Shown: positions 27,103 through 62,205, counted from the stretch's first letter. The stretch: 64,000 nt of DNA from Phaeosaccion multiseriatum (GCA_965112735.1 OZ218965.1:1240001-1304000); one strand, 5' to 3'. A program made the numbers and translations. Notes: generated from the sequence alone by a model not told the origin.

Positions 27103-29336
27103 TCAGGCCCGAGGGGCTACGGCATCGCTCTCTGGGCGATCCCGTGCCGATCCGTCCGCTCCCCCTCCGATCGTATCACTATTTGGTGCCGATGACTCGT
27201 TTACGGCGTCTTCCTGAGCTGGCCCCTGCCCCTCGCACTGCTGCTGTATGACCAACTGCTCTTGCTGTTGGTGGTGCACCCTCCACGCCCTGTCCCGGAG
27301 CATGACGAGCAGCCCCCGCCTCTTCCACGCTGAGCAGTTGGTGATACAGGTAGAGAGGGGTGTGTTGGTTAGTCGCACCCACTCACCCTCCCCATATATA
27401 TATATATACGCCTCAACTCTCACCCGCTTCTCTCTTTCTGCGCATCCTCCTGACGGGTGCATTGATGAGCTGCGTACATATCCCCTCGTGCCCCTTTAGT
27501 TCGGCCAGCAAATGGGCGTTATAGAGGCCGTCGGCAGTCATGGTGTCTAGCTTCGCACCTCCGTCTAAGAGGAGTCGAACCACACCCTCGTGTCCACTCC
27601 GAGCTGCCAACTGTGACGCACGAGAGAGAGAGGATGGGGGGGGGGGGGAGATGAGAGAGAGGGAGAGAGGGAGGATGAGAGAGAGAGAGGGAGAGAGAGA
27701 GGAAGAGGGAGAGAAAAGGAGAGAGAGAGAGGAAGAGGGAGAGAGAGAGAGAGGGAGAAAGAGAGCGAGAGAGGGAGAGAGAGAGACAGGTAGACAAGTA
27801 GCGGAGATACAGAGAGAAGACACCCGCCACGACAGCGACAGGGGGGTGACGGAACGAACAAGGTGGGCATTGCTTGCTTTGTTTACATGTATGCGGAGAT
27901 TACACAGACTTCAGGGTATTCACCACACAGGGTGGGAGGAGAGGGGAGAGGGAGGGAGGGAGGGGGAGGGAGTGAGGGATGGAAGAAGGGAGGGAGAGGA
28001 GGAAGGGAGGAAGAGTGGGAGGGATGGAAGGAGGGATGGGATGGGGGGAGAGAAGTGAGACAATTGGTGATTCGCCTGCGCACCATGAGGGCCGAGTAGC
28101 CGCTGGTGTTGACGGTGTCGAGCGATGTGCCTGCCCCCGCCTTTAGCAGCTCCTTCACGAGCGTCTCTTCTCCGTTGTCCGAGCTAATCATCAGACTGGT
28201 GACACGTTCAGTGGCACATGGGGTGGTGGGTGGGGAGAGTCACGGGCATTGGTCACAACTCTCTCTCTCTCTCTCACTCTCTCTTTCACTCTCTCTCTCT
28301 CACTCTCTTTCACTCTCTCTCTCTCACACACACTCTCTCTCTCTCTCTCTCAGGGTCACAGGCATTGGTCCGAACTCTCTCTCTCTCTCTCTCTTCCCTC
28401 TATGGCGCCAGTCACGCACACCCTGTCGATGGGTACTGTGCCTTCGTTCTCCGCTACCCCGCCTCGCGAAGCCATGTAAGCTTCGGTACTCGCATCGGGC
28501 CCCGGTCTGCCTCCCTAGCCAACCACCACACACATACGAAATTCTGAGGTTGATTCCTACAGGGAAAAAAAGTGAAAAGATTCCCTAGCCAACTAGCACT
28601 ACAAGTGAAAAGATTGCCTAGCCAACTAGCACTACAAGTCAAAAGATTCCCTAGCCAACTGGCACTCACCAAGTCCACCCCTCACTGTCGGCCCAGCCCA
28701 GCTCTGCAGGGGAGAGGGGTGGACCGTTGAGTACTGTCTGTACCGTCGCTAAGTCCCCCTCCTTCACGGCCTTAAAGAGCTGCCGACACTTCAGAGACGC
28801 CACCTTGCGTAGCTATACCATCCCATCCGGGGGGGGGGGCAGGAGGAGGAGGGGGGGGGGTGTGGGGTGGAGGGAGGGAGGTTGTAGGGGTCAAGGCGAT
28901 GAGGAGGAGGGAGCTTGTGCGAATAATCACGAGGAGGAGGGGGATACGGGATGCAAGAGGGAGGGAGGGAAGAGTAAAGACGAGGAGAGAGAGGTTTTGC
29001 AAGAAAAAGAGGGCAGAGAGACGGGGAAGTTGTGGGGGTAACAGGTGTTGCAAATAAAGAGGGTGGAGAGAGTGACGCCGTGGGGGCAAGGATGAGGAGG
29101 AGGGGGGTATTGCAAGGTCATCGGCACAGAGGAAGGGAAGGGAGAGGTTGCGAGCGTAGAGAGAATAATTCCGAAGAGAAACGGCGGAAAAGGTGTTCCC
29201 TCACCATCGACGTCGTGCATCCGCATCCCGCATGGTGGTGGTGGTGGTGGTGGTGGTGGTGGTCATGGTCCTGCGCGAGAAACTCGTGGATGTAGTTGTC
29301 GTGCGTCGCCGGCGTCTGGTGCCGTACGAATCGCAT
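27103..29336 (-). CDS. Ankyrin-repeat protein with N-terminal poly-His
   Basis: Exons 29336-29205 (MRFVRHQ...HHHHHHHHHHAGCGCTTSM), ~28813-28670 (LFKAVKEGDLATVQTVL...DSEGWT), ~28195-28085 (LMISSDNGEETLVKELLKAGA...GYSALM), ~27610-27424 (LAARSGHEGVVRLLLDGGA) and ~27329-27103 (AWKRRGLLVMLR...). The 3' end is uncertain. Confidence 0.8.
28573..28668. repeat. 33-bp tandem repeat x3 in intron
   Basis: AAAAGATT(C/G)CCTAGCCAACTAGCACTACAAGT repeated three times next to the donor site. Confidence 0.85.
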
Positions 29337-29754: not shown

Positions 29755-30747
29755 ATGGGTGGTGCCAGTGCGGCTGCTTCAGCTGCTCTCGGCCCCGTTG
29801 CCCTTGCCGTAAGTGAGGGGAGCGATGCTCAGACCCTCGAAGCTTGTGAACAGGCCCTGGCTCAGGCTGTATTGCTCTGTAGCGTGATGGAGTGGACTGG
29901 TGGGGGCCACGACTTGTTCGTAGCGGCGGTGAGCAAGGAGTGGAAGGAGCACTACAGACGTCTTCATTGGGCCAAGACAACCCGGGTCAGGAGTGTGGTT
30001 GAGTCTGTGGAGCGTTTGAGGTGGGCCAGGAAGTACGGGTATGAGCTGAGTGTGAAGACTTTTGAGGCTGCGGCACAGTACGGAGATGTGCGTATTTGCA
30101 AGGCTCTTCACAGCATGGGGTGTGCCTGGGGTTGGACCGTATCCAAGGTTACGGTGCGGAATGAAAGGCACGGACTGAGCATCCTCCAATGGCTGCGAGT
30201 GGAGGACCTGCCAAACAAGAAGTTTCGCCCGTGGGATCAGCTCCGTCTTTGTTGCGAAGCTGGCGAGTGCGGGAATTTGGAAGTTCTTACGTGGCTGCTG
30301 TCCGACGAGTTTGAGGGCCCTCCTCAATCTATTATGTGGATGGCGGCTGTAAAGGCGGGGCACTTCAGCGTGTTGGACACGATTGTGCACCATCCCAAGG
30401 TCAGAGCTGAGATGGAGATGACAAAGAACTACAACTGGTGGAGGGATGGGGCTAAATGGGCGGCCGCGGAAGGCAATCTGGAAGTGCTGCAGTGGCTCCA
30501 TGCAAACGCACGGGAGCTGTGCAGGTGGAATGCAGATGTCTGCTATTTGGCAGTCCAGAAGGGCAAGAGTCTCGCTATCCTCAAGTGGCTCCGCTCGGAG
30601 GAGGTCATGTGTCCCTGGGACAGCAGGGCATGCCCACAGGTCGTGGAAAACACACAAGGTCCTGAATGGGGTATCCCCCCTGCCGCCCTTGAGGAGATGA
30701 AGCAGTGGGTGCACGCCAATGGTCACCCCTGCGAGTGCGAGGACTGA
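29755..30747 (+). CDS. F-box-like + ankyrin-like repeat protein, subfamily A copy 1 (intronless)
   Basis: 330-aa ORF with LFVAAVSKEWK (F-box-like end), repeats AA..G.L.VL.WL....cpWd and C-terminal HPCECED. Confidence 0.85.
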   Translation: MGGASAAASAALGPVALAVSEGSDAQTLEACEQALAQAVLLCSVMEWTGGGHDLFVAAVSKEWKEHYRRLHWAKTTRVRSVVESVERLRWARKYGYELSVKTFEAAAQYGDVRICKALHSMGCAWGWTVSKVTVRNERHGLSILQWLRVEDLPNKKFRPWDQLRLCCEAGECGNLEVLTWLLSDEFEGPPQSIMWMAAVKAGHFSVLDTIVHHPKVRAEMEMTKNYNWWRDGAKWAAAEGNLEVLQWLHANARELCRWNADVCYLAVQKGKSLAILKWLRSEEVMCPWDSRACPQVVENTQGPEWGIPPAALEEMKQWVHANGHPCECED

Positions 30748-31874
30748 GTGACCAGGGCATACAGCGTGGCCCCTCCTGCGTCGAGCACCGTCTTGTTTTG
30801 TTTCGCACACGGTGCCATAGAAAGGGGCTTCACTTCAGCCCCTCTCTCTTTGTAAGAAGTGTGCTTCTTCTTCCAGCCGAATCAGTGCATACCGTAGCAT
30901 AACGAATGTATAGATACATACGTCGACTTTGGGCCTAGCACCGGCTTCCTTTCTCCGAAACTCTGAGAAGAGCCTCACACGCCTCTCGCCGCGTAACGGC
31001 AGTACTTGCACTGATATCAGCCAATGGCTTTGGATCGCCCTCTCCTCCTCCTCCTCCTCCCCTCCCTTACTGCGTTGCTTTCCTCAACCCCCCGCGGAGA
31101 GCGCCAAGCAGGAAGTCTATTGTGTGAGCTCTTCATTGCCTGAACCCTGATCACGCATGCCCCCACCAGTCCTGGCCCATTCCGCTTGCCTCGCTGCTCT
31201 GCACGGGCGGGTGGGCGCCTTCCCCAAAGCCAGGGCCGCAATGCTCTGCCCTGCTCCACTCCCAAACGCTCTGGAGGAGCGCATGCAATAGCAATAGTGG
31301 GGCAGCACCACCACTCACACTCACAGTAGAAGGAACACCTCAACTCCACTCTGCAAAAACAACACCCCTATCATACAGACTGCCTTCCCCTTCTGTCCCC
31401 CCTCCGTCTCAGTCTCATCCTGGACCTCATTCCTCTTCCTCTCCGCCTCCTCCTTCCCCCTCCTGTCCAACTTCATCTCCTCTGCGGCTTCGCTCAGCGG
31501 CCCCGCCCGCGCTGCCCCCATCTGACGTGTGTACCCCGTGCTTGCATCATCCCTGAAGCACCACCGTCTTGCTCGAGTGGAGCAGCCAAAGGGGGCTGGG
31601 TCGGTCTGGGTGACGGGGTGTGGGGTCGGGGCAAGAGGGGGCAGGCAGAGGCGGGGAAAGGGGCAGTGAAGAGGATCAGAGAACAGATAGCAGCAGGAGG
31701 AGCTGCAGACAGGCATTCGGTAACCTCAAAAGCACCGCCAAGCCAGAGAGCACTCCCATCCGCCCCGCTCACCTCGACTTGTTGCCCCCCCTATTCGAAG
31801 AGGCTGTCGCCGCCTTCTCAGGGCCGCCTCCCTTCCTACCCGTCCTGCCTCCGTCTTGAAACGCTTCCTGCCAG

Positions 31875-32897
31875 TCAGTCCTCGCAGTCGCAGGGGTGAC
31901 CATTGTCGTGCACCCACTGCTTCATCTCCTCAAAGGCGGCAGGGGACATATCCAAGTCATCACCATCTGCGTCTTTCCAGAACTGTGGGCATGCCAACTC
32001 GTCCCAGGGACACATGACCTCCTCCGAGCGGAGCCACTTCAGGACAGAGAGGCTCTTACCGCTACAAACTGCTTCACCACAGACATCTTCATCCCACGTG
32101 CACAGCTCCCGTGCGTTTGCATGCAGCCACTGCAGCACTTCCACATTGCCTTCCGCGGCCGCCCTGAGAGCCCCATTCCTCCACACGCTGTCCCCCTCAG
32201 CCGCCTCCATCTCAGCTCTGACCTTGGGATGGTGCACAAGCATGTCCAACGCGCGAATGCGCCCCCCGTCTACAGCCCCCGACCACATACCAGGTAGAGG
32301 GCCCTCAAACTCGTCGGACAGCAGCCACGTAAGAACCTCCACATTGCCGCACTCGCCAGCTGAGTACCCGACGGTATCCTGTGACCAAGGACCTTGCTCC
32401 TTGTTGGGGAGATCCTCGGATCGCAGCCACTTGAGAATACGCAGTCCATGCCTAGCATTCCTCACAGCCGCCCTACAGGCCATTGTATCCCAGGGGCAGT
32501 GCATGCGGTGAAGCAGCTCCTCGCACACGCTCACATCTCCGTACTCTGCCGCCGCTCTGAAAGTGTCCACACTCAGCTCGTACCCACATTTCTCCTTGGC
32601 CCACCGCAAGCACCTGACAGACTCCACCACGCTTGGAAGGGAAGTCTCGGCTGAAGGGTGGGCCACGCTGTAGTGCTCTTTCCATTTCTTACATACGGTG
32701 GCGGTGAAGACGTGGCGGCCCTTCCCCACAAGGGCCACGATTCTCTGCAGGACCTCCTCCATTCCCAGGGCCTTGGCACTGGCCACGTACGTCTCCTGCA
32801 CAGCACCTTCTCCCTCGGCAGTCTCCGCGGTATAACTTGTCACACCTTCCTCCGTGCCCAGGCGCTGCCTCTTGGAGGCATCCTCTGCCTCTGCCAT
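31875..32897 (-). CDS. F-box-like + ankyrin-like repeat protein, subfamily B copy 1 (intronless)
   Basis: First ATG at 32897 (MAEAEDASKRQRL); LGMEEVLQRIVALVGKGRHVFTATVCKKWK; same repeat type; ends HPCDCED. Confidence 0.85.
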   Translation of the reverse strand: MAEAEDASKRQRLGTEEGVTSYTAETAEGEGAVQETYVASAKALGMEEVLQRIVALVGKGRHVFTATVCKKWKEHYSVAHPSAETSLPSVVESVRCLRWAKEKCGYELSVDTFRAAAEYGDVSVCEELLHRMHCPWDTMACRAAVRNARHGLRILKWLRSEDLPNKEQGPWSQDTVGYSAGECGNVEVLTWLLSDEFEGPLPGMWSGAVDGGRIRALDMLVHHPKVRAEMEAAEGDSVWRNGALRAAAEGNVEVLQWLHANARELCTWDEDVCGEAVCSGKSLSVLKWLRSEEVMCPWDELACPQFWKDADGDDLDMSPAAFEEMKQWVHDNGHPCDCED

Positions 32898-33484
32898 GGC
32901 GTGTGTGTTGCCCACTTCGCCAGAGTATCTGCAGCGCTTCAAAGAAATGACTAATGGCCCCACCTTCTCTGTGCTATCACGCAGCAATGGCGGCCTTGTT
33001 TGCGCCGGCCCCGCGCTCCGTCTCTTCGGGTCGTGTGGCGACTACAGAGCTCGACTACCAGGCCGACGCTGAACGACCAACTTGCCTTGTATCCCTCTCA
33101 ACTCACTCTCCACGCACCACCTCCGTTCCTCTTCGACCAAGCAGCAGGTAGGAGTGCGGCGCTGAAGAGTGCAGGCTGGAGGAGGCTTAGAGCAGCCAAG
33201 GGCCTGCTGGGAGATGGTGATGGAGTCCATCGAAGTCAACTTGCCCTCCACACTCTTCGGCTCTTCGGGGGGGGGGGGGGGGGTCTCGGCAAAGGCCCAA
33301 CAGCAGGGGAGGTACCGATACCGCCTTTTACTCACACTGCGTGTCATTTCCGTCCTGTCTTTCCCCCTCCCCCTTCCCTTCTCTCGTCGTACCAGGCTTC
33401 GCTGAGGAAAGCTAAAAGGCTTCTTCCCCCCCATCACCTGCCCCACACCGCACATCATACGTGCCAACCAGTCATCCAGAAGAC

Positions 33485-34576
33485 ATGGACGGACCGAGCC
33501 GAAAGCATGGCGGCAAAAGGCTCCAGCCAGCTCCACCCACCGACTCCTCGGCAGGGGAAGTATGTCTGACTTTGCATGGAGGCGGTGGTGCCGGTGCCGC
33601 TTTACTACCTACTCCCGGCCCCGCCGACCTTGCTGGAGGCGAGGGAAGCGATGCTCAGACCTTCGAAGCTTGTGAAGAGGCTCTGGCCCAGGCTGTATTG
33701 CTCAGTAGCGTGATGGAGTGGACTGGTGGGGGCCACGACTTGTTCGTAGCGGCGGTGAGCAAGGAGTGGAAGGAGCACTACAGACGTCTTCATCCGGCCA
33801 AGACAACCCGGATCAGGAGTGTGGTTGAGTCTGAGGAGCGTTTGAGGTGGGCCAGGAAGTACGGGTATGAGCTGAGTGTGAAGACTTTTGGGGCTGCGGC
33901 ACAGTACGGAGACTTGCGTATTTGCAAGGCTCTTCACAGCATGGGGTGTGCCTGGGGTTGGGCCGTATGCAAGGTTACGGTGCGGAATGAAAAGCACGCA
34001 CTGAGCATCCTCCAATGGCTGCGAGCGGAGGACCTGCCCAACAAGGAGCGGTGCCCGTGGGAGCAGCACTTCATTTGTGGCGAAGCTGGCAAGTGCGGCC
34101 ATGTGGAGGTTCTTACGTGGCTGCTGTCCGACGAGTTTGAGGGCCCTCCTCAATTTGATATGTGGGTGGGGGCTGTGCAGGCGGGGCGCATTCGCGTGCT
34201 GGACATGCTTGTGCACCATCCCAAGGTCAGAGCTGAGATGGAGGCGGCTGAGGGGGACAGCGAGTGGAGGTGGGGGGCTCTCTGGGCGGCCCAGGAAGGC
34301 AATCTGGAAATGCTGCAGTGGCTGCATGCAAACGCACGGGAGCTGTGCAGGTGGGATGAAGATGTCACTACTGCAGCAGTTTATAGCGGTGAGAGCCTCT
34401 CTGTCCTGAAGTGGCTCCGCTCGGAGGAGGTCATGTGTCCCTGGGACAGAAGGGCATGCCCAAAAGTCGTGAAAAACCAATTTGGTCAATATGGATGGGA
34501 TATGGCCCCTGCCGCCTTTGAGGAGATGAAGCAGTGGGTACACGACAATGGTCACCCCTGCGAGTGCGAGGACTGA
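33485..34576 (+). CDS. F-box-like + ankyrin-like repeat protein, subfamily A copy 2
   Basis: ATG at 33485 (MDGPSRKHGGKRL); intact paralog of A1. Confidence 0.87.
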   Translation: MDGPSRKHGGKRLQPAPPTDSSAGEVCLTLHGGGGAGAALLPTPGPADLAGGEGSDAQTFEACEEALAQAVLLSSVMEWTGGGHDLFVAAVSKEWKEHYRRLHPAKTTRIRSVVESEERLRWARKYGYELSVKTFGAAAQYGDLRICKALHSMGCAWGWAVCKVTVRNEKHALSILQWLRAEDLPNKERCPWEQHFICGEAGKCGHVEVLTWLLSDEFEGPPQFDMWVGAVQAGRIRVLDMLVHHPKVRAEMEAAEGDSEWRWGALWAAQEGNLEMLQWLHANARELCRWDEDVTTAAVYSGESLSVLKWLRSEEVMCPWDRRACPKVVKNQFGQYGWDMAPAAFEEMKQWVHDNGHPCECED

Positions 34577-35662
34577 GTGACCACGGCAGACAGCGCGGCC
34601 CCTCCTGCGTCAAGCATCGTCTTGTTTCGCACACGGTGCCATAGAAAGGGGCTTCACTTCAGCCCCTCTCTCTTTGTTACTAGTGTGTTTCTTCTTCCAG
34701 CCGAATCAATGGATACCATAAAGCTTAACACGTACGTATAATATATAGACAGTTTGACTTGGCCCTTTCCCTCTGCGAAGCCTTTGGTCGAGCAGTGCCA
34801 CGCACCCCTCTCCAATGACATATTTGAAACGCCCTTCCCCTTTCTCATCTTCTACTGCTGCCCTTATTCAACCCCCCGCGGAGAGCGCCAAGCAGGAAGT
34901 CTATTGTGTGAGCTCTTCATTGCCTTAACCCTAATCACGCATGCCCCCACAAGGCCTGGCCCATTCCGCTTGCCTCGCTGCTCTGCACGGGCGGGTGGGC
35001 GCCTTCCCCAAAGCCAGGGCCGCAACGCTCTGCCCTGCTCCACTCCCAAACGCTCTGGAGGAGCGCATGCAATAGCAATAGTGGGGCAGCACCACCACTC
35101 ACACTCACAGTAGAAGGAACACCTCAACTAACTCCACTTTGCAAAAACAACACCCCTATCATACAGACTGCCTTCCCCTTCTGTCCCCCCTCCGTCTCAG
35201 TCTCATCCTGGACCTCATTCCTCTTCCTCTCCGCCTCCTCCTTCCCCCTCCTGTCCTTCTTCATCTCCTCTGCGGCTTCGCTCAGCTGCCCCGCCCGCGC
35301 TGCCCCCATCTGACGTGTGTACCCCGTGCTTGCATCATCCCTGAAGCACCACCGTCTTGCTCGAGTGGAGCAGCCAAAGGGGGCTGGGTCGGTCTGGGCG
35401 ACGGGCTGTGGGGTCGGGGCAAGAGGGGGCAGGCAGAGGCGGGGAAGGGGGCAGGGAAGAGGATCAGAGAACAGATAGCAGCAGAACAAGCAGCAGATGG
35501 GCATTCGGTAACCTCGAAAGCACCGCCAAGCCAGAGAGCACTCCCATCCGCCCCGCTCACCTCGACTTGTTGCCCCCCCTATTCGAAGAGGCTGTCGCCG
35601 CCTTCTCAGGGCCGCCTCCCTTCCTACCCGTCCTGCCTCCGTCTCGAAACGCTTCCTGCCAG

Positions 35663-36700
35663 TCAGTCCTCGCAGTCGCAGGGGTGACCATTGGCGTGCA
35701 CCCACTGCTTCATCTCCTCAAAGACGGCAGGGGGCATATCCCAGTCATCACCATATGCGTCTTTCCAGTACTGTTGGCATGCGCGCTCGTCCCAGGGACA
35801 CATGACCTCCTCCGAGCGGAGCCACTTCAGGACAGAGAGGCTCCCCCACTTTGTTGCTGCAGTAGTGACACCTTCATCCCACGTGCACAGCTCCCGTGCG
35901 TTTGCATGTAGCCACTGCAGCACTTCCAGATTGCCTTCCTGGGCCGCCCAGAGAGCCCCCCTCGTCCATCCCACAGCCGCCCCCATCTCAGCTACCTTCG
36001 GATGGTGCACAAGCATGTCCAACGCGCGAATGCACCCCCTCTTTACAGCCCCCTTCCACATATAATATTGAGGAGGGCCCTCAAACTCGTCGGACAGCAG
36101 CCACGTAAGAACCTCCACATTGCCGCACTCGCCAGCTGAGTACCCGACCCAATCCTGTGACCAAGGACCTTGCTCCTCGTTGGGGAGGTCCTCGGATCGC
36201 AGCCACTGGAGAAAACGCAGTCCATGCAGCCATTGGAGAATACGCTGTCCATGCCTAGCATTCCTCACAGCCGCCCTACAGGCCGTTGTATCCCAGGGGC
36301 AGTGCATGTGGTGAAGCAGCTCCTCGCACACGCTCACATCTCCGTACTCTGCCGCCGCTCTGAAAGTGTCCACACTCAGCTCGTACCCACATTTCTCCTT
36401 GGCCCACTGCAAGCACCTGACAGACTCCACCACGCTTGGAAGGGAAGTCTCGGCTGAAGGGTGGGCCACGCTGTAGTGCTCTTTCCATTCCCTACATACG
36501 GTGGCGGTGAAGACGTGGCGGCCCTTCCCCACAAGGGGCATGATTTTCTGCAGGACCTCCTCCATTCCCAGGGCCTTGGCACTGGCCACGTACGTCTCCT
36601 GCACAGCACCTTCTCCCTCGGCAGTCTCCGCGGTACAACTTGTCACACCTTCCTCCGTGCCCAGGCGCTGCCTCTTGGAGGCATCCTCTGCCTCTGCCAT
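35663..36700 (-). CDS. F-box-like + ankyrin-like repeat protein, subfamily B copy 2
   Basis: ATG at 36700; intact paralog of B1 with an in-frame 27-nt duplication and small in-frame deletions. Confidence 0.87.
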   Translation of the reverse strand: MAEAEDASKRQRLGTEEGVTSCTAETAEGEGAVQETYVASAKALGMEEVLQKIMPLVGKGRHVFTATVCREWKEHYSVAHPSAETSLPSVVESVRCLQWAKEKCGYELSVDTFRAAAEYGDVSVCEELLHHMHCPWDTTACRAAVRNARHGQRILQWLHGLRFLQWLRSEDLPNEEQGPWSQDWVGYSAGECGNVEVLTWLLSDEFEGPPQYYMWKGAVKRGCIRALDMLVHHPKVAEMGAAVGWTRGALWAAQEGNLEVLQWLHANARELCTWDEGVTTAATKWGSLSVLKWLRSEEVMCPWDERACQQYWKDAYGDDWDMPPAVFEEMKQWVHANGHPCDCED

Positions 36701-37298
36701 GGCGTGTGTGTTGCCCACTTCGCCAGAGTATCTGCAGCGCTTCAACGAAATGACTAATGGCCCCACCTTCTCTGTTCCATCATGCAGCAATGGCGGCCTT
36801 GTTTCCGCCGGCCCCGCGCTCCGTCTCTTCGGGTGGTGTGGCGACTACAGAGCTCGACTACCAGGCCGACTCTGAACGACCAACTTGCCTTGTATCCCTC
36901 TCAACTCACTCTCCACGCACCACCTCCGTTCCTCTTCGACCAAGCAGCAGGTAGGAGTGTGGCGCTGTAGAGTGCAGGCTGGAGGAGGCTTAGAGCAGTC
37001 GAGGCCGTGCTGGGAGATGGTGATCGAGTCCATCGAAGTCAACTTGCCCTCCACACTCTTCGGCTCTTCGGGGGGGGGGGGGTGTCTCGGCAAAGGCCCA
37101 ACAGCAGGGGAGGTACCGATGCCGCCTTTTCCTCACACTGCGTGTCATTTCCGTCCTGTCAATCCCCCTCCCCCTTCCCTTCTCTCGTCGTACCAGGCTT
37201 CGCTGAGGAAAGCTAAAGGGCTTCTTCCCCCCCATCACCTGCCCCGCACCGCGCATCATAAGTGTCAAGCAGTCATCTAGAGTGGGACCGCGGAAGAC

Positions 37299-38384
37299 AT
37301 GGACGGACCGAGCCGAAAGCATGGCGGCAAAAGGCTCCAGCCAGCTCCACCCACCGACTCCTCGGCAGGGGAAGTATGTCTGACTTTGCATGGAGGCGGT
37401 GGTGCCGGTGCCGCTGTGGCGGCTTCTCCCGGTCCCGCTGCACTTGCTGGAGGCGAGGGAAGCGATGCTCAGACCTTCGAAGCTTGTGAAGAGGCTCTGG
37501 CCCAGTCTGTAATGCTCAGTAGCGTGATGGAGTGGACTGGTGGGGGCCACGACTTGTTCGTAGCGGCGGTGAGCAAGGAGTGGGAGGAGCACTACAGACG
37601 TCTTCATCCGGCCAAGACAACCCGGATCAGGAGTGTGGTTGAGTCTGAGGAGTGTTTGAGGTGGGCCAGGAAGTACGGGTATGAGCTGAATGTGAAGACT
37701 TTTGAGGCTGCGGCACAGTACGGAGACTTGCGTATTTGCAAGGCTCTTCACAGCATGGGGTGTGCCTGGGGTTTGACCGTATGCAAGGTTGCGGTGAGGA
37801 ATGAAAAGCACGGACTGAGCATCCTCCAATGGCTGCGATCCGAGGACCTACCCAGCAAGGAGCGGTGCCCGTGTGAGCAGCACTTAATTTGTGGCCAAGC
37901 TGGCAAGTGCGGCCATGTGGAGGTTCTTACGTGGCTGCTGTCCGACGAGTTTGAGGGCCCTCCTCAATTTGATATGTGGGTGGGGGCTGTGCGGGCGGGG
38001 CGCATTCGCGTGTTGGACATGCTTGTGCACCATCCCAAGATCAGAGCTAAGATGGAGGCGGCAGGTAACTACAGCGGGTGGAGGTGGGGGGCTAGCTGGG
38101 CGGCCCAGGAAGGCAATCTGGAAGTGCTGCAGTGGCTGCATGCAAACGCACGGGAGCTGTGCAGGTGGGATGAAGATGTCTGTTTTGAAGCAGTTTGTAG
38201 CGGTAAGAGCCTCTCTGTCCTGAAGTGGCTCCGCTCGGAGGAGGTCATGTGTCCCTGGGACAGAAGGGCATGCCCACGAGTCAACGCACATGGCCCATAT
38301 GGATGGGATATGCCCCCTGCCGCCTTTGAGGAGATGAAGCTGTGGGTGCACGCCAATGGTCACCCCTGCGAGTGCGAGGACTGA
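37299..38384 (+). CDS. F-box-like + ankyrin-like repeat protein, subfamily A copy 3
   Basis: 361-aa intact ORF; paralog of A1/A2. Confidence 0.87.
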   Translation: MDGPSRKHGGKRLQPAPPTDSSAGEVCLTLHGGGGAGAAVAASPGPAALAGGEGSDAQTFEACEEALAQSVMLSSVMEWTGGGHDLFVAAVSKEWEEHYRRLHPAKTTRIRSVVESEECLRWARKYGYELNVKTFEAAAQYGDLRICKALHSMGCAWGLTVCKVAVRNEKHGLSILQWLRSEDLPSKERCPCEQHLICGQAGKCGHVEVLTWLLSDEFEGPPQFDMWVGAVRAGRIRVLDMLVHHPKIRAKMEAAGNYSGWRWGASWAAQEGNLEVLQWLHANARELCRWDEDVCFEAVCSGKSLSVLKWLRSEEVMCPWDRRACPRVNAHGPYGWDMPPAAFEEMKLWVHANGHPCECED

Positions 38385-39466
38385 GTGACCACGGCAGACA
38401 GCGCGGCCCCTCCTGCGTCAAGCATCGTCTTGTTTCGCACACGGTGCCATAGAAAGGGGCTTCACTTCAGCCCCTCTCTCTTTGTGAGAAGTGTGCTTCT
38501 TCTTCCAGCCGAATCAATGGATACCATAAAGCTTAACACGTACGTATAATATATAGACAGTTTGACTTGGCCCTTTCCCTCTGCGAAGCCTTTGGTCGAG
38601 CAGTGCCACGCACCCCTCTCCAATGACTTATTTGAAACGCCCTTCCCCTTTCTCATCTTCTACTGCTGCCCTTATTCAACCCCCCGCGGAGAGCGCCAAG
38701 CAGGAAGTCTATTGTGTGAGCTCTTCATTGCCTTAACCCTAATCACGCATGCCCCCACAAGGCCTGCCCCATTCCGCTTGCCTCGCTGCTCTGCACGGGC
38801 GGGTGGGCGCCTTCCCCAAAGCCAGGGCCGCAATGCTCTGCCCTGTTCCACTCCCAAACGCTCTGGAGGAGCGCATGCAATAGCAATAGTGGGGCAGCAC
38901 CACCACTCACACTCACAGTAGAAGGAACACCTCAACTCCACTTTGCAAAAATAACAACCCTATCATACAGACTGCCTTCCCCTTCTGTCCCCCCTCCGTC
39001 TCATTCTTACCCTGGACCTCATTCCTCTTCCTCTCCGCCTCCTCCTTCCCCCTCCCGTCCTTCTTCATCTCCTCTGCGGCTTCGCTCAGCGGCCCCGCCC
39101 GCGCTGCCCCCACCCGACGTGTGTACCCCGTGCTTGCATCATCCCTGAAGCACCACCGTCTTGCTCGAGTGGAGCAGCCAAAGGGGGCTGGGTCGGTCTG
39201 GGTGACGGGCTGTGGGGTGGGGGCAAGAGGGGGCAGGCAGAGGCGGGAAAGGGAGCAGTGAAGAGGATCAGAGAACAGATAGCAGCAGAACAAGCAGCAG
39301 ATGGGCATTCGGTAACCTCAAAAGCACCGCCAAGCCAGAGAGCACTCCCATCCGCCCCGCTCACCTCGACTTGTTGCCCCCCCTATTCGAAGAGGCTGTC
39401 GCCGCCTTCTCAGGGCCGCCTCCCTTCCTACCCGTCCTGCCTCCGTCTCGAAACGCTTCCTGCCAG

Positions 39467-40492
39467 TCAGTCCTCGCAGTCGCAGGGGTGACCATTGTCG
39501 TGCACCCACTGCTTCATCTCCTCAAAGGCGGCAGGGGGCATATACCAGAGATCATCGACTCTGTCTTTAATGTACTCCGGGCATGCCGACTCGTCCCAGG
39601 GACACATGACCTCCTCCGAGCGGAGCCACTTCAGGACAGAGAGGCTCCTCCCGTGGAAAATTGCTTCAAAACAGACATCTTCATCCCACCTGCACAGCTC
39701 CCGTGCGTTTGCATGCAGCCACTGCAGCACTTCCAGATTGCCTTCCTCGGCCGCCCTGAGAGCCCCATCCCTCCACCCGCTGAGGTCCCCTGCCGCCTCC
39801 ATCTCAGCTCTGACCTTCGGATGGTGCACAAGCATGTCCAACGCGCGAATGCACCCCGCCTGCACAGCCCCCTCCCACATATAATATAGAGGAGGGCTCT
39901 CAAACTCGTCGGACAGCAGCCACGTAAGAACCTCGACATTGCCGCACTCGCCAGCTTCGTGCCCGACGTCATTCTGTGACCAAGGACCTTGCTCCTTGTT
40001 GGGGAGGTCCTCGGATCGCAGCCACTGGAGAATACGCAGTCCATGCCTAGCATTCCTCACAGCCGCCCCACAGGCCGTTGTATCCCAGGGGCAGTGCATG
40101 CGGTGAAGCAGCTCCTCGCACACGCTCACATCTCCGTACTCTGCCGCCGCTCTGGAAGTGCCCACACTCAGCTCGAACCCACATTTCTCCTTGGCCCACT
40201 GCAAGCACTTGACAGACTCCACCACGCTTGGAAGGGAAGTCTCGGCTGAAGGGTGGGCCATGCTGTAGTGCTCTTTCCATTCCCTACATACCGTGGCGGT
40301 GAAGACGTGGCGGCCCTTCCCCACAAGGGGCATGATTTTCTGCAGGACCTCCTCCATTCCCAGGGCCTTGGCACTGGCCACGTACGTCTCCTGCACAGCA
40401 CCTTCGCCCTCGGCAGTCTCCGCGGTATAACTTGTCACACCTTCCTCCGTGCCCAGGCGCTGCCTCTTGGAGGCATCCTCTGCCTCTGCCAT
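39467..40492 (-). CDS. F-box-like + ankyrin-like repeat protein, subfamily B copy 3
   Basis: ATG at 40492 (MAEAEDASKRQRL); intact paralog of B1/B2. Confidence 0.87.
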   Translation of the reverse strand: MAEAEDASKRQRLGTEEGVTSYTAETAEGEGAVQETYVASAKALGMEEVLQKIMPLVGKGRHVFTATVCREWKEHYSMAHPSAETSLPSVVESVKCLQWAKEKCGFELSVGTSRAAAEYGDVSVCEELLHRMHCPWDTTACGAAVRNARHGLRILQWLRSEDLPNKEQGPWSQNDVGHEAGECGNVEVLTWLLSDEFESPPLYYMWEGAVQAGCIRALDMLVHHPKVRAEMEAAGDLSGWRDGALRAAEEGNLEVLQWLHANARELCRWDEDVCFEAIFHGRSLSVLKWLRSEEVMCPWDESACPEYIKDRVDDLWYMPPAAFEEMKQWVHDNGHPCDCED

Positions 40493-41392
40493 GGCGTGTG
40501 TGTTGCCCACTTCGCCAGAGTATCTGCAGCGCTTCAAAGAAATGACTAATGGCCCCACCTTCTCTGTGCTATCATGCAGCAATGGCGGCCTTGTTTGCGC
40601 CGGCCCCGCGCTGCCTCCGTCTCTTCGGGTCGTGTGGCGACTACAGATGTCCACTATCATCAGCATCACCATCACTACACTCTTCTTTCCGCTGTTACTG
40701 AGAGGTCAATTCCTCCGGGGTCAAGCACCATTTCTCCCTTACTTCAATGAGGCCGGCACTCATTTATTTACGCGGGAAATGCTCACATCACCCTGCTGCT
40801 GCTGCTGTTGCTGTCTTTGGTTGTGGGAAGGGAGAAGAAGAAGGAGGAGGCTTTGCGGCCTTCGTCGGCATCACTCATTACGGCACTTTGCCTGTTTTCT
40901 GAACTCTCTTTCTTCCCGCTGTTATTGAGAGGTCAATTCCTTCCTTGAATACCTGCCGGGGCCGACGCTGAACGACCAACTTGCCTTGTATCCCTCTCAA
41001 CTCACTCTCCACGCACCACCTCCGTTCCTCTTCGACCAAGCAGCAGGTAGGAGTGTGGCGCTGAAGAGTGCAGGCTGGAGGAGGCTTAGAGCAGTCGAGG
41101 CCGTGCGGAGAGATGGTGATCGAGTCCATCGAATTCAGCTTCCATCCCCTCCCCTTCTCTTCGGCTCTTCGGGGGGGGTCTCGGCAAAGGCCCAACAGCA
41201 GGGGAGGTACCGATGCCGCCTTTTCCTCACACTGCGTGTCATTTCCGTCCTGTCAATCCCCCTCCCCCTTCTCTTCTCTCGTCGTACCAGGCTTCGCTGA
41301 GGAAAGCTAAAAGGCTTCTTCCCCCCCATCACCTGCCCCACACCGCACATCATACGTGCCAACCAGTCATCCAGAGTGGGACCGCAGAAGAC

Positions 41393-42481
41393 ATGGACGT
41401 ACCGAGCCGAAAGCATGGCGGCAAAAGGCTCCAGCCAGCTCCACCCACCGACTCCTCGGCAGGGGAAGTATGTCTGACTTTGCATGGAGGCGGTGGTGCC
41501 GGTGCCGCTGTGGCGGCTTCCCCCGGTCCCGCTGCCCTTGCTGGAGGCGAGGGAAGCGATGCTCAGACCTTCGAAGCTTGTGAAGAGGCTCTGGCCCAGG
41601 CTGTAATGCTCCGTAGCGTGATGGAGTGGACTGGTGGGGGCCACGACTTGTTCGTAGCGGCGGTGAGCAAGGAGTGGAAGGAGCACTACAGACGTCTTCA
41701 TTGGGCCAAGACAACCCGGATCAGGAGTGTGGTTGAGTCTGAGGAGCGTTTGAGGTGGGCCCTGAAGTACGGGTATGAGCTGAGTGTGAAGACTTTTGAG
41801 GCTGCGGCACAGTACGGAGACTTGCGTATTTGCAAGGCTCTTCACAGCATGGGGTGTGCCTGGGGTCGGGCCGTATGCATAGCTGCGGTGAGGAATGAAA
41901 GGCACGCACTGAGCATCCTCCAATGGCTGCGAGCGGAGGACCTGCCCAACAAGGAGCGGTGCCCGTGGCGGCTGTACTCCATTTGTGGCGAAGCTGGCAA
42001 GTGCGGCCATGTGGAGGTTCTTACGTGGCTGCTGTCCGACGAGTTTGAGGGCCCTCCTGAATTTGATATGTTGGAGGGGGCTGTAAAGGCGGGGCGCATT
42101 CGCGTGTTGGACATGGTTGTGCACCATCCCAAGGTCAGAGCTGAGATGGAGGCGGCTGAGGGGGACAGCGAGTGGAGGTGGGGAGATTTCTGGGCAGCCA
42201 GGCAAGGCAATCTGGAAGTGCTGCAGTGGCTGCATGCAAACGCACGGATCGAGCTGTGCACGTGGGATGAAGATGTCTGTGCTGAAGCAGTTCGTGGCGG
42301 TAAGAGCCTCTCTGTCCTGAAATGGCTCCGCTCGGAGGAGGTCATGTGTCCCTGGAACGAGTCGGCCTGCCCACAGTACTTTGAAGGAGTGATTCATGGA
42401 TGGGATATGCCCCCTGCCGCCTTTGAGGAGATGAAGCAGTGGGTGCACGCCAATGGTCACCCCTGCGACTGCGAGGACTGA
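41393..42481 (+). CDS. F-box-like + ankyrin-like repeat protein, subfamily A copy 4
   Basis: ATG at 41393 (MDVPSRKHGGKRL); intact; carries the B-type C-terminus (CDCED). Confidence 0.87.
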   Translation: MDVPSRKHGGKRLQPAPPTDSSAGEVCLTLHGGGGAGAAVAASPGPAALAGGEGSDAQTFEACEEALAQAVMLRSVMEWTGGGHDLFVAAVSKEWKEHYRRLHWAKTTRIRSVVESEERLRWALKYGYELSVKTFEAAAQYGDLRICKALHSMGCAWGRAVCIAAVRNERHALSILQWLRAEDLPNKERCPWRLYSICGEAGKCGHVEVLTWLLSDEFEGPPEFDMLEGAVKAGRIRVLDMVVHHPKVRAEMEAAEGDSEWRWGDFWAARQGNLEVLQWLHANARIELCTWDEDVCAEAVRGGKSLSVLKWLRSEEVMCPWNESACPQYFEGVIHGWDMPPAAFEEMKQWVHANGHPCDCED

Positions 42482-42687
42482 GTGACCAGGGCAGACAGCG
42501 CGGCCCCTCCTGCGTCAAGCATCGTCTTGTTTCGCACACGGTGCCATAGAAAGGGGCTTCACTTCAGCCCCTCTCTCTTTGTGAGAAGTGTGCTTCTTCA
42601 AAAAATCGATATGTCGATATTTGATGTCGATCTTTGCATGTCCCTGTCGTCCACAATCAATTACATTGGAAGAGAGAAAAAGAGAGC

Positions 42688-44148
42688 ATGAGTAAAAAAA
42701 GCATCCTGGATACGCTGACGGAGGAGGAGCGGGAGGACTACGAGGAGGCTTTCAAGTGCGTCGAAATGCCCGCCCTTCTATTTGTAGCTCTCACTTGCCT
42801 CCTCCTGATCGATCCCTGATCCCTTCCCTCTTCCCCAAGTGTCGTTGTCTTCTGTTTATGGACTGAATTGCGTGCAATGCTCTGCTCCGCCGCAACCACC
42901 CCTTTGCGAACTGTCGATTGCCACTCTCTCTTTGCGAGCTGTGAAAGGCCATTCCCCACTCTTCCTTCAACCCCCCCCCCCCGCCCCTTCTCCCTCCCTC
43001 TTCCCTTGTCTCTGCACTGCAGGAACTTCGACAAGGATGGAGACAATACAATTTCCCAGGAGGTGAGGGGAGGGGAGGGGAGGGGAGGGGAGGAGCGAGC
43101 AGGCAGTAGCAGCTAACGCCTTTGTCGTATAGCTCAGCCCCCTTCACGGATTCCGGACTGTGCCCTAAAATGAGAGCTATATCGGCGGCCAGGCCGACAA
43201 GGCAGCGGCCGCCCTTAATATTGATCGGACTCTTCATTCGCTAATGCGTGTGCGATGCTGCCGCTGCTGCTGAATCACCAAATATCGTGCTTCTCGGGTG
43301 CCACTCAGGAGCTGGGTACCGTGATGCGAAGCCTCGGCTACAAGCAAACGGACGCGCAGCTGGAGGAGATGTTCAAGTCTGTGGATGAGGATAAATCCGG
43401 CGAAATGTACGGGCGTGTGGGTACAGGGGAGAGGGAGGAAGGGAGGGGGAATGCGGGGACGTCGAGGGCAGTAAGAGCCTGGTGGGGAGGAAAGTAGTGA
43501 TTGGGGACCTGTGAAGCCGTGCCTTGCCGCTGCAACGGTGTCTTAACGCTTTTCTTACGGCACCCACCACCGCTCCCCCCTTTGCAGCGACTTTGAAGAG
43601 TTTGTGACGATGATGAAGAGGTCGGACGTGAAGACGGACTACGAAACAGAGCTACTCGAGGCATTCGAGTTCTTCGATCAGGTATATCGGGCTGGGAGAC
43701 GGAGGGAAGAGCAAGGAGGGAAGGGGGGGGTCGGGAGAGGGAGGGCAGAGTAAGGAGGGAAGGTCTTCTGGACGGAGGGTAGGAGGTAATGCGCAGCACC
43801 GCAGCCTCAAGCCATTGTCCTTGTGGTGGCGCCTTTCTCTCCCGAGTGAGAATGGCACCATATATCAATCATAGTGATGTGCTGCTGTGACCATCAACCA
43901 CCCCCCTTCCTTCTTCCCCTGCACTTGTTAGGATGGCAACGGACAGATTACGCCGGACGAGCTGGCGGACATTATGCGTGGGCTTGGCGCCAAGCTGTCG
44001 GAGAATGAGGTCAAGATGCTTATCGACTCCGCAGGTGAGGCGGGGCAAGCCCTGCTTTTTTCATCTCCCCAGCTCTCCCCACCTGCGGCTCTGTACGGCT
44101 CTGCTGGAGTTGCAGTTTCAGCTTCCTCGGCCGAAGAGGGAGGGGGGA

Positions 44149-44203
<55 letters not shown>

Positions 44204-44920
44204 TGTGTGTGTCCGGACGCGCACGGTCCAAGCCGTGGGTTTCCGAGACGCAATGGAGATTTGGCCTGGCCTGCGCGGATGGGGTGTAGTGAAGGACTCA
44301 ACTGTGCACCTGCCATCCTCCCCCTGCCCTCAACTGTGCACCTGCCATCCTCCCCCTGCCCTCAACTGTGCACCTGCCATCCTCCCCCTGCCCTCAACTG
44401 TGCACCTGCCATCCTCCCCCTCCCCCTGCCCACCCTCCCTTCAGATAACGACAAAGACGGCAAGATTGGCTTTGACGAGTTCTCAAGGGTAAGTGTGGTT
44501 GATGTGCCTTCTTCCGTCTCAACCACGAGTCAGTCCTGTGTACACACACACACACGCACACGCACACGCACACACACACGCACACACACACTCACACACA
44601 CACACACGCACACACACACACACACACACACAGAAACGTACACGCACACACATACACACACACAGAAACGCACACCCACACACATACATACACACACACA
44701 CATACACACACACATACACACACACACACATACACACACGCACACACACTCACACAAACACACACACACACACACACACATACACACACACACGAACGCG
44801 CCCGAGCCGAGGAATGGTGGAGGGTCCCCAGCGCAGGTGCCCTTTCCGTGTTTGCATCCCTCTGATGTCGCGTGGTCAACACCTGCCTGCCCGTCTCTCC
44901 CTCAGGTCATGTCCAACTAG
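42688..44920 (+). CDS. Calmodulin-like protein, four EF-hands, 7 exons
   Basis: Spliced product MSKKSILDTLTEEEREDYEEAFK|NFDKDGDNTISQE|ELGTVMRSLGYKQTDAQLEEMFKSVDEDKSGEI|DFEEFVTMM...LLEAFEFFDQ|DGNGQITPDEL...IDSA|DNDKDGKIGFDEFSR|VMSN*. Four canonical loops, but divergent from true calmodulin. Confidence 0.92.
44297..44420. repeat. 32-bp tandem repeat x~4 in calmodulin-like intron
   Basis: CTCAACTGTGCACCTGCCATCCTCCCCCTGCC repeated just upstream of the acceptor. Confidence 0.88.
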
Positions 44921-46091: not shown

Positions 46092-46555
46092 ATGGTGTTG
46101 ATGGTGTGTGATGGTGTGTGATGGTGTGTGATGGTGTGTGATGGTGTGTTGATGGTGTGTGATGGTGTGTGATGGTGTGTGATGGTGTGTGATGGTGTGT
46201 GATGGTGTGTGATGGTGTGTGATGGTGTGTGATGGTGTGTTGATGGTGTGTTGATGGTGTGTGATGGTGTGTTGATGGTGTGTTGATGGTGTGTGATGGT
46301 GTGTTGATGGTGTGTGATGGTGTGTGATGGTGTGTTGATGGTGTGTGATGGTGTGTGATGGTGTGTGATGGTGTGTTGATGGTGTGTGATGGTGTGTTGA
46401 TGGTGTGTGATGGTGTGTGATGGTGTGTTGATGGTGTGTTGATGGTGTGTTGATGGTGTGTTGATGGTGTGTGATGGTGTGTGATGGTGTGTGATGGTGT
46501 GTTGATGGTGTGTGATGGTGTGTTGATGGTGTGTTGATGGTGTGTTGATGGTGTG
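46092..46555. repeat. 10/11-bp satellite (GATGGTGTGT / GATGGTGTGTT)n
   Basis: About 460 bp made of two interspersed unit lengths; intergenic. Confidence 0.92.
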
Positions 46556-47738: not shown

Positions 47739-50700
47739 ATGAGGTTTGGGGGCTTTGAGGGCAATGAGGTGAGCTTTCTTCGATGATACCATCCACGCGC
47801 ATCTCGCTAGGCTCATGAAGCCATAGCCATGGGGAGCTGAGGTGGTTCGCCGGTCGTGCTCCAGCCTTTTTCATCTCGCTCCCCGGAAAGCTCATATGCT
47901 CTGAGTGATTTTTTGACATGACAGCAGACTGCCCCGCCCCTGTTTTTGTTGCTGTGATGTCCTTGTCATCCACACTCTAACCCTCCTCCCACAAACTCCT
48001 CCTGTCGGACCACACACACACCAGGAGCGAGAGCTCCTCGATGCCATCGAAGAGGACGCCGATGGAGAGTGCGCAGACCGCCCCAATGCCGCCGTGGTGG
48101 AGGCGGTGCAGGCCTTCGTGGCAGCCAAGGGCTCCGAGGCACTGGACAAGCCTCTCCACCCGGGAAACATGACTGCCCTCCAAGCCGCCATCGCCGCTGG
48201 CAAGGGCGGCATCGTCCCCCTGCTCCTGGCAGAGGGTGCCTCTGCGGACGCGCACGACAAAGACGTGCTCCCCAACCAGGGCAGCCGAACTCCGCTAACC
48301 CCTCTCGCGATGGCGGCCGAGGGGGGAGACGAGGAGATGGTCCGAGCTCTGCTGGCAGGTGGCGCCACCGTCAACCTCGCCTCTGTCAAGGGCCACACCC
48401 CTCTGCTGCAGGTAACCAAAGCTATGCCTTGGAACTCCCTAATCATCCTGTTGCTGCTGCTACTGCTGCTGCTGCTGGACTTGTTAGTGTGCTGTACTAT
48501 CCCCAACCCACTGGCTCCTCCCTCTTCCTTGTGCTTGTGCTTGTAGGCGGCGATGAACGGTCACCCTGGTGTGGTAGGGCTCCTCCTCTCTGCCGAGGCC
48601 GCAGTGGACGTACAGAACGATGAGCGTTGCACTCCACTCATCATGGCGGCGTTAGAGGGGCACCAAGATGTGAGTAGCGGTGTTCGTAACCGTAAGCGTA
48701 CGTTGTGTAACCGTGTAAACCGTCTCAACGCAGTTGTCCTGTCTTCGTTTGTGTGCATCACGCACCACTCTGCCCACCACATGCTCTGGCGCCATTCATA
48801 CACACGTAACCTTACATACACCCGTGCCTCGTCACTCCCAATCTCTATCTCTCTCTCTATATATATATATATATCTCTCCCTCTCTCTCTGTCTCTATCT
48901 CTATCTCTATCACTCTCTCTGTCTCTCTCTCTATACTCTCTCTCTCCATCTCTCTCGCGCTCTCTCATCTGATCCTCATCTCTCTCTCTCTCTCTCTACA
49001 TATATATGTATGTCAGGTGGTGCAACAGCTGCTCGACGCCGGTGCCGACGTGAACCGAGCGAGCTCCACCACCCCCCTCGCCGCCGCCGTGCTGGGCAGG
49101 CAGTCGCACGTGGTTCACCAACTCATCAACGTAGGGGCAGACGTGGGCGGGGGGGGGCTCGAACCCACGCCGCTCTTCCTCGCCACTGCCGTGGGGGAAG
49201 AAGGGCTCGTGGAGACTCTGCTGGCGGCAGGGGCAAAGGCGATCGGCATGGGTCTGTTGTCCTTGGCGTGCGATGGTGGCCACGCGGCCATCGTAGGCCT
49301 GCTCCTGGGGGCCGGGGTGAAGGCGGACGAGTGCAGGGAGGGAGAGACACCGCTCTACATCTCCGCGGCCAAGGGGGACGCCGCGATTGTGGGCAAGCTG
49401 CTCGAGGCAGGGGCGGCCCCCGACGAGACCAAGAATGGCATGACGCCGCTCTTTGTTGCCGCCATGAAGGGACATGCCGATGCGGTGACCCTCTTGGTCA
49501 AGGGAGGGGCGGAGGTGGACCAGGCTAGCACGGAAGGCCTCACGCCCCTGCAGACGGCGGCGGCGGCAGGCCACTCCGACACAGTCAAGGCACTGCTGGC
49601 GTGTGGGGCCACGGTGGGGCAGAGGGGTCTGGATGGGGTGGGTGGGCTGCACTTGGCGGCTGCGGCAGGGCACGATGAGGTGAGTGGGGGAAGTGGTGAG
49701 GGTGAGGGGGAGGAGGGGAGGGAGGGAGAGGGAGGGGGGAGGAGGGAGGGAGAGGGAGGGAGGGAGGAGGGAAAGGGAAGGAGGGGTGGTGGTTTTTTCT
49801 TTCTTCCCATCTTACGCAAAAAGCTTTGGCATCCCGCAGCACTCGAATTCCCCCTGTGTTTCGTAGTATCCGACATGGGCTTTCGGTGATCGATTTTATT
49901 ATCCCCCTGCTGAAACCTAAAGCTATACGTAACCCTTACGTAATCTAAAGCATACGTAACCCTTCCGTACGTTCCTGCCTAACACGCACAGGTGGTGCGG
50001 CAGCTGCTCGCGGCCGGTGCTCCGGTGCACACACAGGATACACAGGGAGACACCCCGCTGTACAAGGTAGGTGACGTCATTATGCTTACGTAATGGTTAC
50101 GTACTTGTCGGGAGTGGTGTGTGTGTGTGTGTGTACGGAGAGGAGAGGTGTTGCCTCGCCTCACGGCTGTTTTAGGCCCCAGCCTCCCCCACTTCCGCCC
50201 CCTTCCCTCCCCGCACTGGCTCAGTGCCGCACGCATCCCCTCTGTGCCCCCCCCCCCCCCCCCCCCCCTTTCTCCCTTCCCCCTCTCTCTTACCTCTCCC
50301 CCGACTCCCTCGCTCCTCCCTATCCCACCTCTCCCCCTCCCCTAATACAAAACACTTATGTATATATATATCCTTCTCCCTCTCCTCCCGTCCCCTCCCC
50401 TCCCCTCCCCTCCCCTCCCTTCTCCCTCCCCTCCCCTCTCTCCTTCTCCCTCCCCTCCCCTCCCCTCTCCTCTCAGGCTGCACGCGTGGGTCACAGCGGC
50501 GTGGTGAACCAACTCCTCGCGGCAGGAGCCATCGCCAATGGAGAGGCGGGCGCAGCCGATGGGGCACGAGCCCTGGCCAAAGCCTGCTCCGAAGGGCGAT
50601 CCGCTTGTGTGCACGAGTTGTTGACATACCGCGCCGATGTCAAGAAGGCCATCGCACACGCGAGGAGGAAGAGCTGGCCGCATGTAGGGAAGCGACTCGC

Positions 50701-62149: not shown

Positions 62150-62170
62150 ACTCTGTCTGCCCAAGCCTCC

Positions 62171-62205
<35 letters not shown>

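Follow-up and report, generated by a model that had tools for sequence, protein, structure and literature searches.

What kind of proteins are encoded by an array of seven alternately oriented genes, and what makes them change, are the questions raised by this locus, which lies in a 64-kb stretch of DNA analysed here as a whole (the window). From the sequence, the genes had been predicted to encode F-box-like/ankyrin-like ubiquitin-ligase adaptors under diversifying selection at their substrate-binding face (hereafter, the original prediction). We give a probability of about 0.55 to the reading that they encode SCF-type F-box-like/ankyrin adaptors diversifying their predicted binding face, probably in a pathogen-driven conflict, which would make their role an immune one. 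To our knowledge, little is known about the intracellular recognition of viruses or parasites by stramenopile algae.

As indicated in Table 1, an ORF scan recovered seven intact ORFs of 330 to 363 aa between positions 29755 and 42481, in the order A+, B-, A+, B-, A+, B-, A+ (four A genes on the plus strand and three B genes on the minus strand). All of them end with a TGA codon and none contains an internal stop. The arrangement was the one originally described, and unit comparison confirmed a repeat of about 3.8 kb with a DNA identity of 86-93% from unit to unit; the invariant blocks quoted at that time, as well as the seven strings that follow ELC.W, were present exactly as given. Within the 64-kb window we found neither array copies beyond the seven genes nor, outside the array, donor fragments for the A/B patches described below. 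Compared with A2-A4, the A1 gene is shorter by about 33 codons at its start, where their basic stretch lies, and it has its own upstream DNA. The genes had also been called intronless, which is correct for the coding sequence; in the leader of A2-A4, a candidate 84-nt GT-AG intron was identified. The frame upstream of this candidate intron is not conserved between A2-A4, and a longer spliced N-terminus of the A proteins was ruled out, since frames and stops differ from copy to copy. The head-to-head spacers are presumed to be shared promoter regions.

Table 1. Positions of the array genes, of their recognised parts and of the spacers in the 64-kb window.
Feature	Positions	Strand	Remarks
A1	29755..30747	+	330 aa; most divergent among A copies
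B1	31875..32897	-	340 aa
A2	33485..34576	+	363 aa
B2	35663..36700	-	345 aa; compared with B3, 27-nt in-frame duplication and three in-frame deletions
A3	37299..38384	+	361 aa; structure-modelled copy, mean pLDDT 90.6
B3	39467..40492	-	341 aa
A4	41393..42481	+	362 aa; B-type alleles near end, alignment codons 334, 340, 343, 372
F-box-like three-helix heads, A type	A1 29848..29964, A2 33674..33790, A3 37488..37604, A4 41582..41698	+	
F-box-like heads, B type	B1 32661..32777, B2 36464..36580, B3 40256..40372	-	
Shared rear arm, A type (alignment codon 213 to stop)	A1 30262..30747, A2 34088..34576, A3 37902..38384, A4 41996..42481	+	
Shared rear arm, B type	B1 31875..32357, B2 35663..36133, B3 39467..39952	-	inverted relative to A arms and 83-89% identical to them
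Tail-to-tail spacers, about 1.1 kb	30748..31874, 34577..35662, 38385..39466	.	orientation identical in all three units
Head-to-head spacers, about 0.6 kb	32898..33484, 36701..37298, 40493..41392	.	last with 300-bp insertion
Candidate 84-nt GT-AG intron, 5' leader	A2 33312..33395, A3 37113..37196, A4 41207..41290	+	

The internal indels of the coding sequences were all multiples of three (9 of 9), as compared with 4 of 13 in the spacers (hypergeometric p about 0.0014, computed by hand). From at least 327 changes, about 14.7 stop codons would be expected if the genes were neutral, and none was observed (P0 4e-7). The reading frames are therefore maintained, as the claim of intact genes with in-frame indels implied. 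The spacers had been said to be near-identical. This was true of most of them, with a divergence of 2% (c2/c3 tail-to-tail) to about 5% (divergent spacers), which is the range of the within-type dS (0.04-0.08), but not of the first tail-to-tail spacer (c1), which diverges by 10% and carries a replaced block of about 200 bp, nor of the third head-to-head spacer with its insertion.

Looking at the proteins, the ankyrin-like assignment proved sound. All seven gave an Ank_4 match (26.7-37.9 bits for a cut-off of 22.7), and the A3 protein was modelled (pLDDT 90.6) as a helical head followed by about seven helix pairs, whose best PDB matches were ankyrin proteins and DARPins (TM up to 0.53). Among viral models, the best matches of A3 were ankyrin and F-box-ankyrin proteins of Pandoravirus, Cedratvirus and Pithovirus. 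The TPLH motif was absent from the register table and the A3 model contained no strand of at least three residues that could form a beta-hairpin, meaning that the repeats are of a CPW-type ankyrin variant. The array proteins belong to an ankyrin family termed "CPW-type", which is shared by algae, protists and giant viruses and has the consensus repeat AA..G..L.WL...GCPW; relatives with about 30% identity were recovered from algae, protists and an oomycete, as well as from Pithovirus and metagenomes, and those in databases include Tribonema, Chaetoceros and Chloropicon.

The N-terminal head had been called F-box-like on the basis of a pattern ending in VCK.W, which fits the B type, while the A type reads VSKEW. 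The Leu-Pro start typical of F-boxes is replaced in both A and B, and when each of the seven heads was searched alone, none matched the Pfam F-box at E<=10. The head of B1, the sole head modelled alone, had F-box chains as its top nine fold matches but with a low Z (3.2-4.3) and an rmsd of 1.8-4.9 A; its matches include Skp2 and Legionella AnkB. The missing Pfam matches, the replaced start and the low Z would suit binders that are under selection without a working coupling to SCF, the head being a degenerate F-box relic that serves as an N-cap or binds another partner, and the proteins acting as decoys, inhibitors or sensors. We regard this alternative as a real possibility, if an unlikely one, given that the head has been retained in dozens of distant proteins (named relatives include Tribonema and Heterococcus), that A and B heads differ by a dN of 0.56 for a dS of 1.8, and that the head profile matched only F-box proteins in the PDB (24 of 24 matches, best E 7e-4). 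In addition, 32 of 69 relatives have a head matching Pfam F-box PF00646, and the seven heads of the array scored 40-48 bits on a family profile built without them. Among recent copies the head showed an omega of 1.5 with few changes, and no measurable purifying selection. The F-box-like assignment thus survives through the family profile and the predicted fold, and not through direct Pfam matches; from these two lines we take the constant three-helix head of the proteins to be F-box-like by descent and, probably, by fold, with a putative docking on SKP1.

If the array proteins are SCF adaptors, the head would dock on SKP1-cullin 1, the variable groove would bind proteins that change and are probably foreign (of viral or parasite origin), and these would be passed on for ubiquitination, as in the F-box families of nematodes and plants. 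Positive selection has been described in the nematode (FTH/FBA2) and plant families (Thomas 2006, cited in PMC3984280 and PMC12062965), and the selection pattern of the array matches theirs. Those families share with the array an N-terminal F-box-type head, a fast-changing C-terminal binding domain and gene birth and death; unlike them, the array has a CPW-type ankyrin solenoid, a degenerate head whose SKP1 binding is putative, and a probable stramenopile host. The same adaptors might have diversified against endogenous or other non-pathogen targets, namely selfish elements or partners in self/non-self or mating recognition. Classes of target are indistinguishable from sequence, and the basic N-terminal stretches of A2-A4 and B might point to targets in the nucleus; nevertheless, large F-box families that change fast with codon precision are usually interpreted in terms of a conflict between host and parasite (PMC3984280 and PMC12062965), and we consider targets of this kind improbable.

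The architecture that we favour also occurs in pathogen proteins. Legionella AnkB (PDB 5k35) and the F-box/ankyrin proteins of Pandoravirus, Pithovirus and Cedratvirus have, as is predicted for the array, an N-terminal F-box fold followed by ankyrin repeats, but they are encoded by the pathogen, whereas the array is a selected set among intron-rich host genes. The chlorovirus proteins A682L and A607R are Skp1-binding ankyrin proteins (PMC7019647); as in the array, where the link is putative, ankyrin repeats are tied to SCF in an algal setting, but their Skp1-binding motif is C-terminal and viral, while that of the array would be N-terminal and host-encoded. A search of the openly accessible literature returned no paper on a CPW-type F-box-like/ankyrin family in stramenopiles. 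If our reading is true, such a host family, selected with codon precision, would correspond to the SCF repertoires of nematodes and plants, and would use a fold known chiefly from proteins of giant viruses and Legionella.

The selection itself was measured with self-written GY94-type codon models, and not with PAML. Whole-gene dN/dS was about 1.0-1.2 among A2-A4, 1.4-1.7 among the B genes and 0.43-0.54 between A and B. Comparison of M8 with M8a gave 2dlnL values of 44 (A2-A4), 102 (B) and 70 (A1-A4). Since such site tests are inflated by multi-base changes and by conversion, additional controls were made. The values remained at 29-31 when multi-hit changes were allowed, and at 29 and 57 with a free rate per 20-codon window. 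When the rate of both types of change could be raised codon by codon, the support for omega>1 was p 0.067/0.045 for A and 0.0004/0.009 for B. Positive selection thus holds up under the multi-hit and regional-rate models and is weaker under single-codon rates.

We then located the sites with omega>1, and they were concentrated on the inner helices and not evenly spread. With an inner/outer partition taken from the helices of the model and chosen after the pattern was seen, the inner helices had an omega of 3.5-3.75 (p about 1e-5; 3.75 and p 2e-5 with their own branch lengths), whereas the outer helices of repeats 4-7 had an omega of 0.37. Variability peaked at register positions 6, 9, 13 and 14 with a periodicity of 90-100 degrees (p 0.0002), meaning that the variable positions lie on one helix face; positions 13 and 14 are among those randomised in DARPin libraries. 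These results support the claim of diversifying selection on one face, and show that, in the inner helices of repeats 4-7, amino-acid replacements are favoured on a single side, the predicted binding face.

Could a neutral patchwork, in which surface residues are under relaxed constraint and short tracts converted from distant paralogs imitate positive selection, produce the same picture? Tract import does inflate the site test: sixty neutral simulations with imported tracts gave 20-40% of false positives at a nominal 5%. The weaker signal under the per-codon rate model goes in the same direction, as does the pS of 0.157 at invariant codons adjoining hot codons, as compared with 0.074 elsewhere. 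The maximum of the simulations was 20, however, and the real values were 2 to 5 times this maximum; hot codons alternate with invariant ones at helical spacing; and in the inner helices pN (0.216) exceeded both pS (0.087) and the spacer divergence (0.02-0.05), which was the comparison of variable sites with spacers called for by the original prediction. We thus hold a purely neutral origin to be very improbable. In the C-terminal loop omega was 1.7 (not significant) and synonymous change was also high (pS 0.24), which points to tract import at that place. DGR-like targeted mutagenesis was discarded, as the changed bases (G 35, A 31, T 22, C 21) had no adenine bias.

The relation between the two types, missed by the earlier reading and new here, depends on the part of the gene considered. 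Over the front 60%, A and B differ by a dS of 1.4-1.8 (1.81 and 1.39) and a dN of 0.36-0.56, as compared with a dS of 0.12 over the last 163 codons or so. Fixed differences between the types numbered 146 in alignment codons 34-212 and 2 in codons 213-375, and the A-B branch had a length of 0.76 changes per site in front and of about 0.02 behind. In the rear arm (codons 213-375), 26 of 52 informative sites were polymorphic in both types, and the similarity of the arms stops at the stop codon. According to these data, the fronts of A and B are those of old paralogs, and the rear arms are nearly alike. Several multi-codon patches cross the types: codons 307-309 are common to A2 and B2, codons 281-309 to A3 and B3, and codons 257-273 to A2, A4 and B1, while A4 has the B allele at alignment codon 372 (pairwise run tests of the shared patches, p 0.002-0.04, uncorrected). 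Donors elsewhere in the genome could explain these patches equally well. The rear-arm tree still weakly separates A from B (87/87), and monophyly of A in the rear arm was not rejected, only an A2-A4 clade being weakly so (p-AU 0.04).

The simplest history would begin with one type acquiring its rear half from the other, through a chimera or a long conversion tract; the A/B pair would then have been amplified through unequal crossing-over, and ectopic conversion among the copies, probably also with family members elsewhere, would continue to shuffle binding-face patches, the new ones being retained by selection. A bolder version, which seems doubtful to us, is that of an anti-pathogen algal SCF repertoire in which the tail-to-tail inverted pairs are a standing diversity generator: two constant fronts would share one pool of rear arms, reshuffled by conversion between inverted copies so frequently that differences would arise from strain to strain or inside a culture. 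The rear arms are indeed inverted repeats about 1.1 kb apart. Facing A and B arms were no closer than others (0.83-0.89 identity in either case), and a search for a flipped spacer revealed no inversion in this assembly. In another eukaryote, clusters of the CPW-type family contain intact and fragmented copies, and one is inverted; a comparable shared arm was discarded for this inverted cluster (L004), whose copies have no DNA similarity to each other.

Lineage-specific tandem expansion of ankyrin-repeat genes is found in Bathycoccus, Tribonema, Chaetoceros and Chloropicon as in the array. The Bathycoccus ankyrin family (HOM000035) has expanded to 149 copies; it is at least a parallel to the family of the array, and the accessible part of the source (PMC3491373) reports no F-box head, selection test or exchange for it. 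The ROCO-LRR and NB-ARC-TPR candidate receptors of Ectocarpus (PMC3341825) are, like the array, stramenopile repeat-protein families with diversifying selection and repeat shuffling. In these brown-algal receptors the repeats are encoded by one exon each and accompanied by a signalling domain, whereas the array genes have no coding introns, exchange within the exon and would encode degradation adaptors. Together with the chlorovirus Skp1-binding proteins, the ankyrin expansions and these receptors are the closest parallels among algae.

The window has the aspect of eukaryotic chromosomal DNA, rich in microsatellites and with about 58% GC; the array itself is poor in microsatellites. That the array derives from giant-virus DNA, or that collapsed haplotypes were assembled into a mosaic, is hardly credible: the viral-model matches of A3, the absence of coding introns and the few microsatellites would fit a viral relic, but viral relatives are just 17-30% identical, close relatives of the head occur in Tribonema, Heterococcus and intron-rich contigs, and a scan of ten flanking ORFs showed no viral gene, while the differences between copies are codon-structured and in frame, unlike assembly errors. 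An endogenous giant-virus element was likewise ruled out by the spliced, host-type neighbours and by the GC and CpG of the array, which are those of its flanks. The array is best explained as a host-chromosomal, locally amplified gene cluster. Its neighbours are intron-rich: canonical ankyrin genes and a gene for ribosomal L4 were recognised nearby from their exons, and the start of a spliced calmodulin-like gene lies about 200 bp past A4.

The plus-strand genes A2, A3 and A4 of the F-box-like/ankyrin array each have a candidate 5' leader intron: an upstream stretch of 84 nt, conserved among the three, that has GT-AG ends and a pyrimidine tract. As for A1, its true form may differ from the ORF as read; a GTAAGT donor-like hexamer lies early in its coding sequence (29807–29815, A1 only) and a second one about 30 bp 5' of the ATG. 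Short basic stretches resembling nuclear localisation signals are present at the N-termini of A2–A4 and of the minus-strand genes B1–B3, and absent from A1. All seven proteins end in an invariant, Cys/His-rich C-terminal cap (last ~45 codons, ending HPCxCED) that could, at a guess, bind zinc.

Features in and around the array and in the metagenome loci (positions in the latter counted within each locus)
Feature	Position	Strand	Remark
Candidate 5' leader intron, GT-AG, 84 nt	33312–33395 (A2), 37113–37196 (A3), 41207–41290 (A4)		upstream of each gene
Long imperfect hairpin	35195–35490	+	same place in other tail-to-tail spacers
300-bp insertion	40660–40960		last head-to-head spacer (B3/A4)
Canonical ankyrin-repeat gene, spliced, exons	27416–28812	-	one side of array
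Canonical ankyrin-repeat gene, spliced, exons	47917–50700	+	other side of array
Calmodulin-like EF-hand gene	42689–44450	+	intron-rich; start ~200 bp past A4
Homogeneous minisatellite	46092–46555		31-bp unit, 15 copies
Homogeneous minisatellite	54459–55149		32-bp unit, 21.6 copies, 95% matches
Ribosomal protein L4 exons	62151–63518	-
CPW-type ankyrin clusters	L003 10001–12945, L004 5493–10462, L005 8283–11101		single metagenome sample

The spacer hairpin, a region picked post hoc, gave a z of -3.35 on the plus strand compared with -0.7 on the minus strand, a signal probably driven by a pyrimidine tract opposite a purine tract, with G-U pairs. The spacer insertion contains a 32-bp direct repeat (40683–40714 and 40910–40941), and no further copy of the insertion was found elsewhere in the window. 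The 3' flank homology of the array stops at 42599. The ribosomal protein L4 exons could help to place the host.

The canonical ankyrin-repeat genes flanking the array are distinct from its CPW-type family. The latter also makes up the several metagenome clusters, each with one intact and at least one fragmented copy amid intron-rich genes; these copies represent birth and death of the CPW-type family in another eukaryote.
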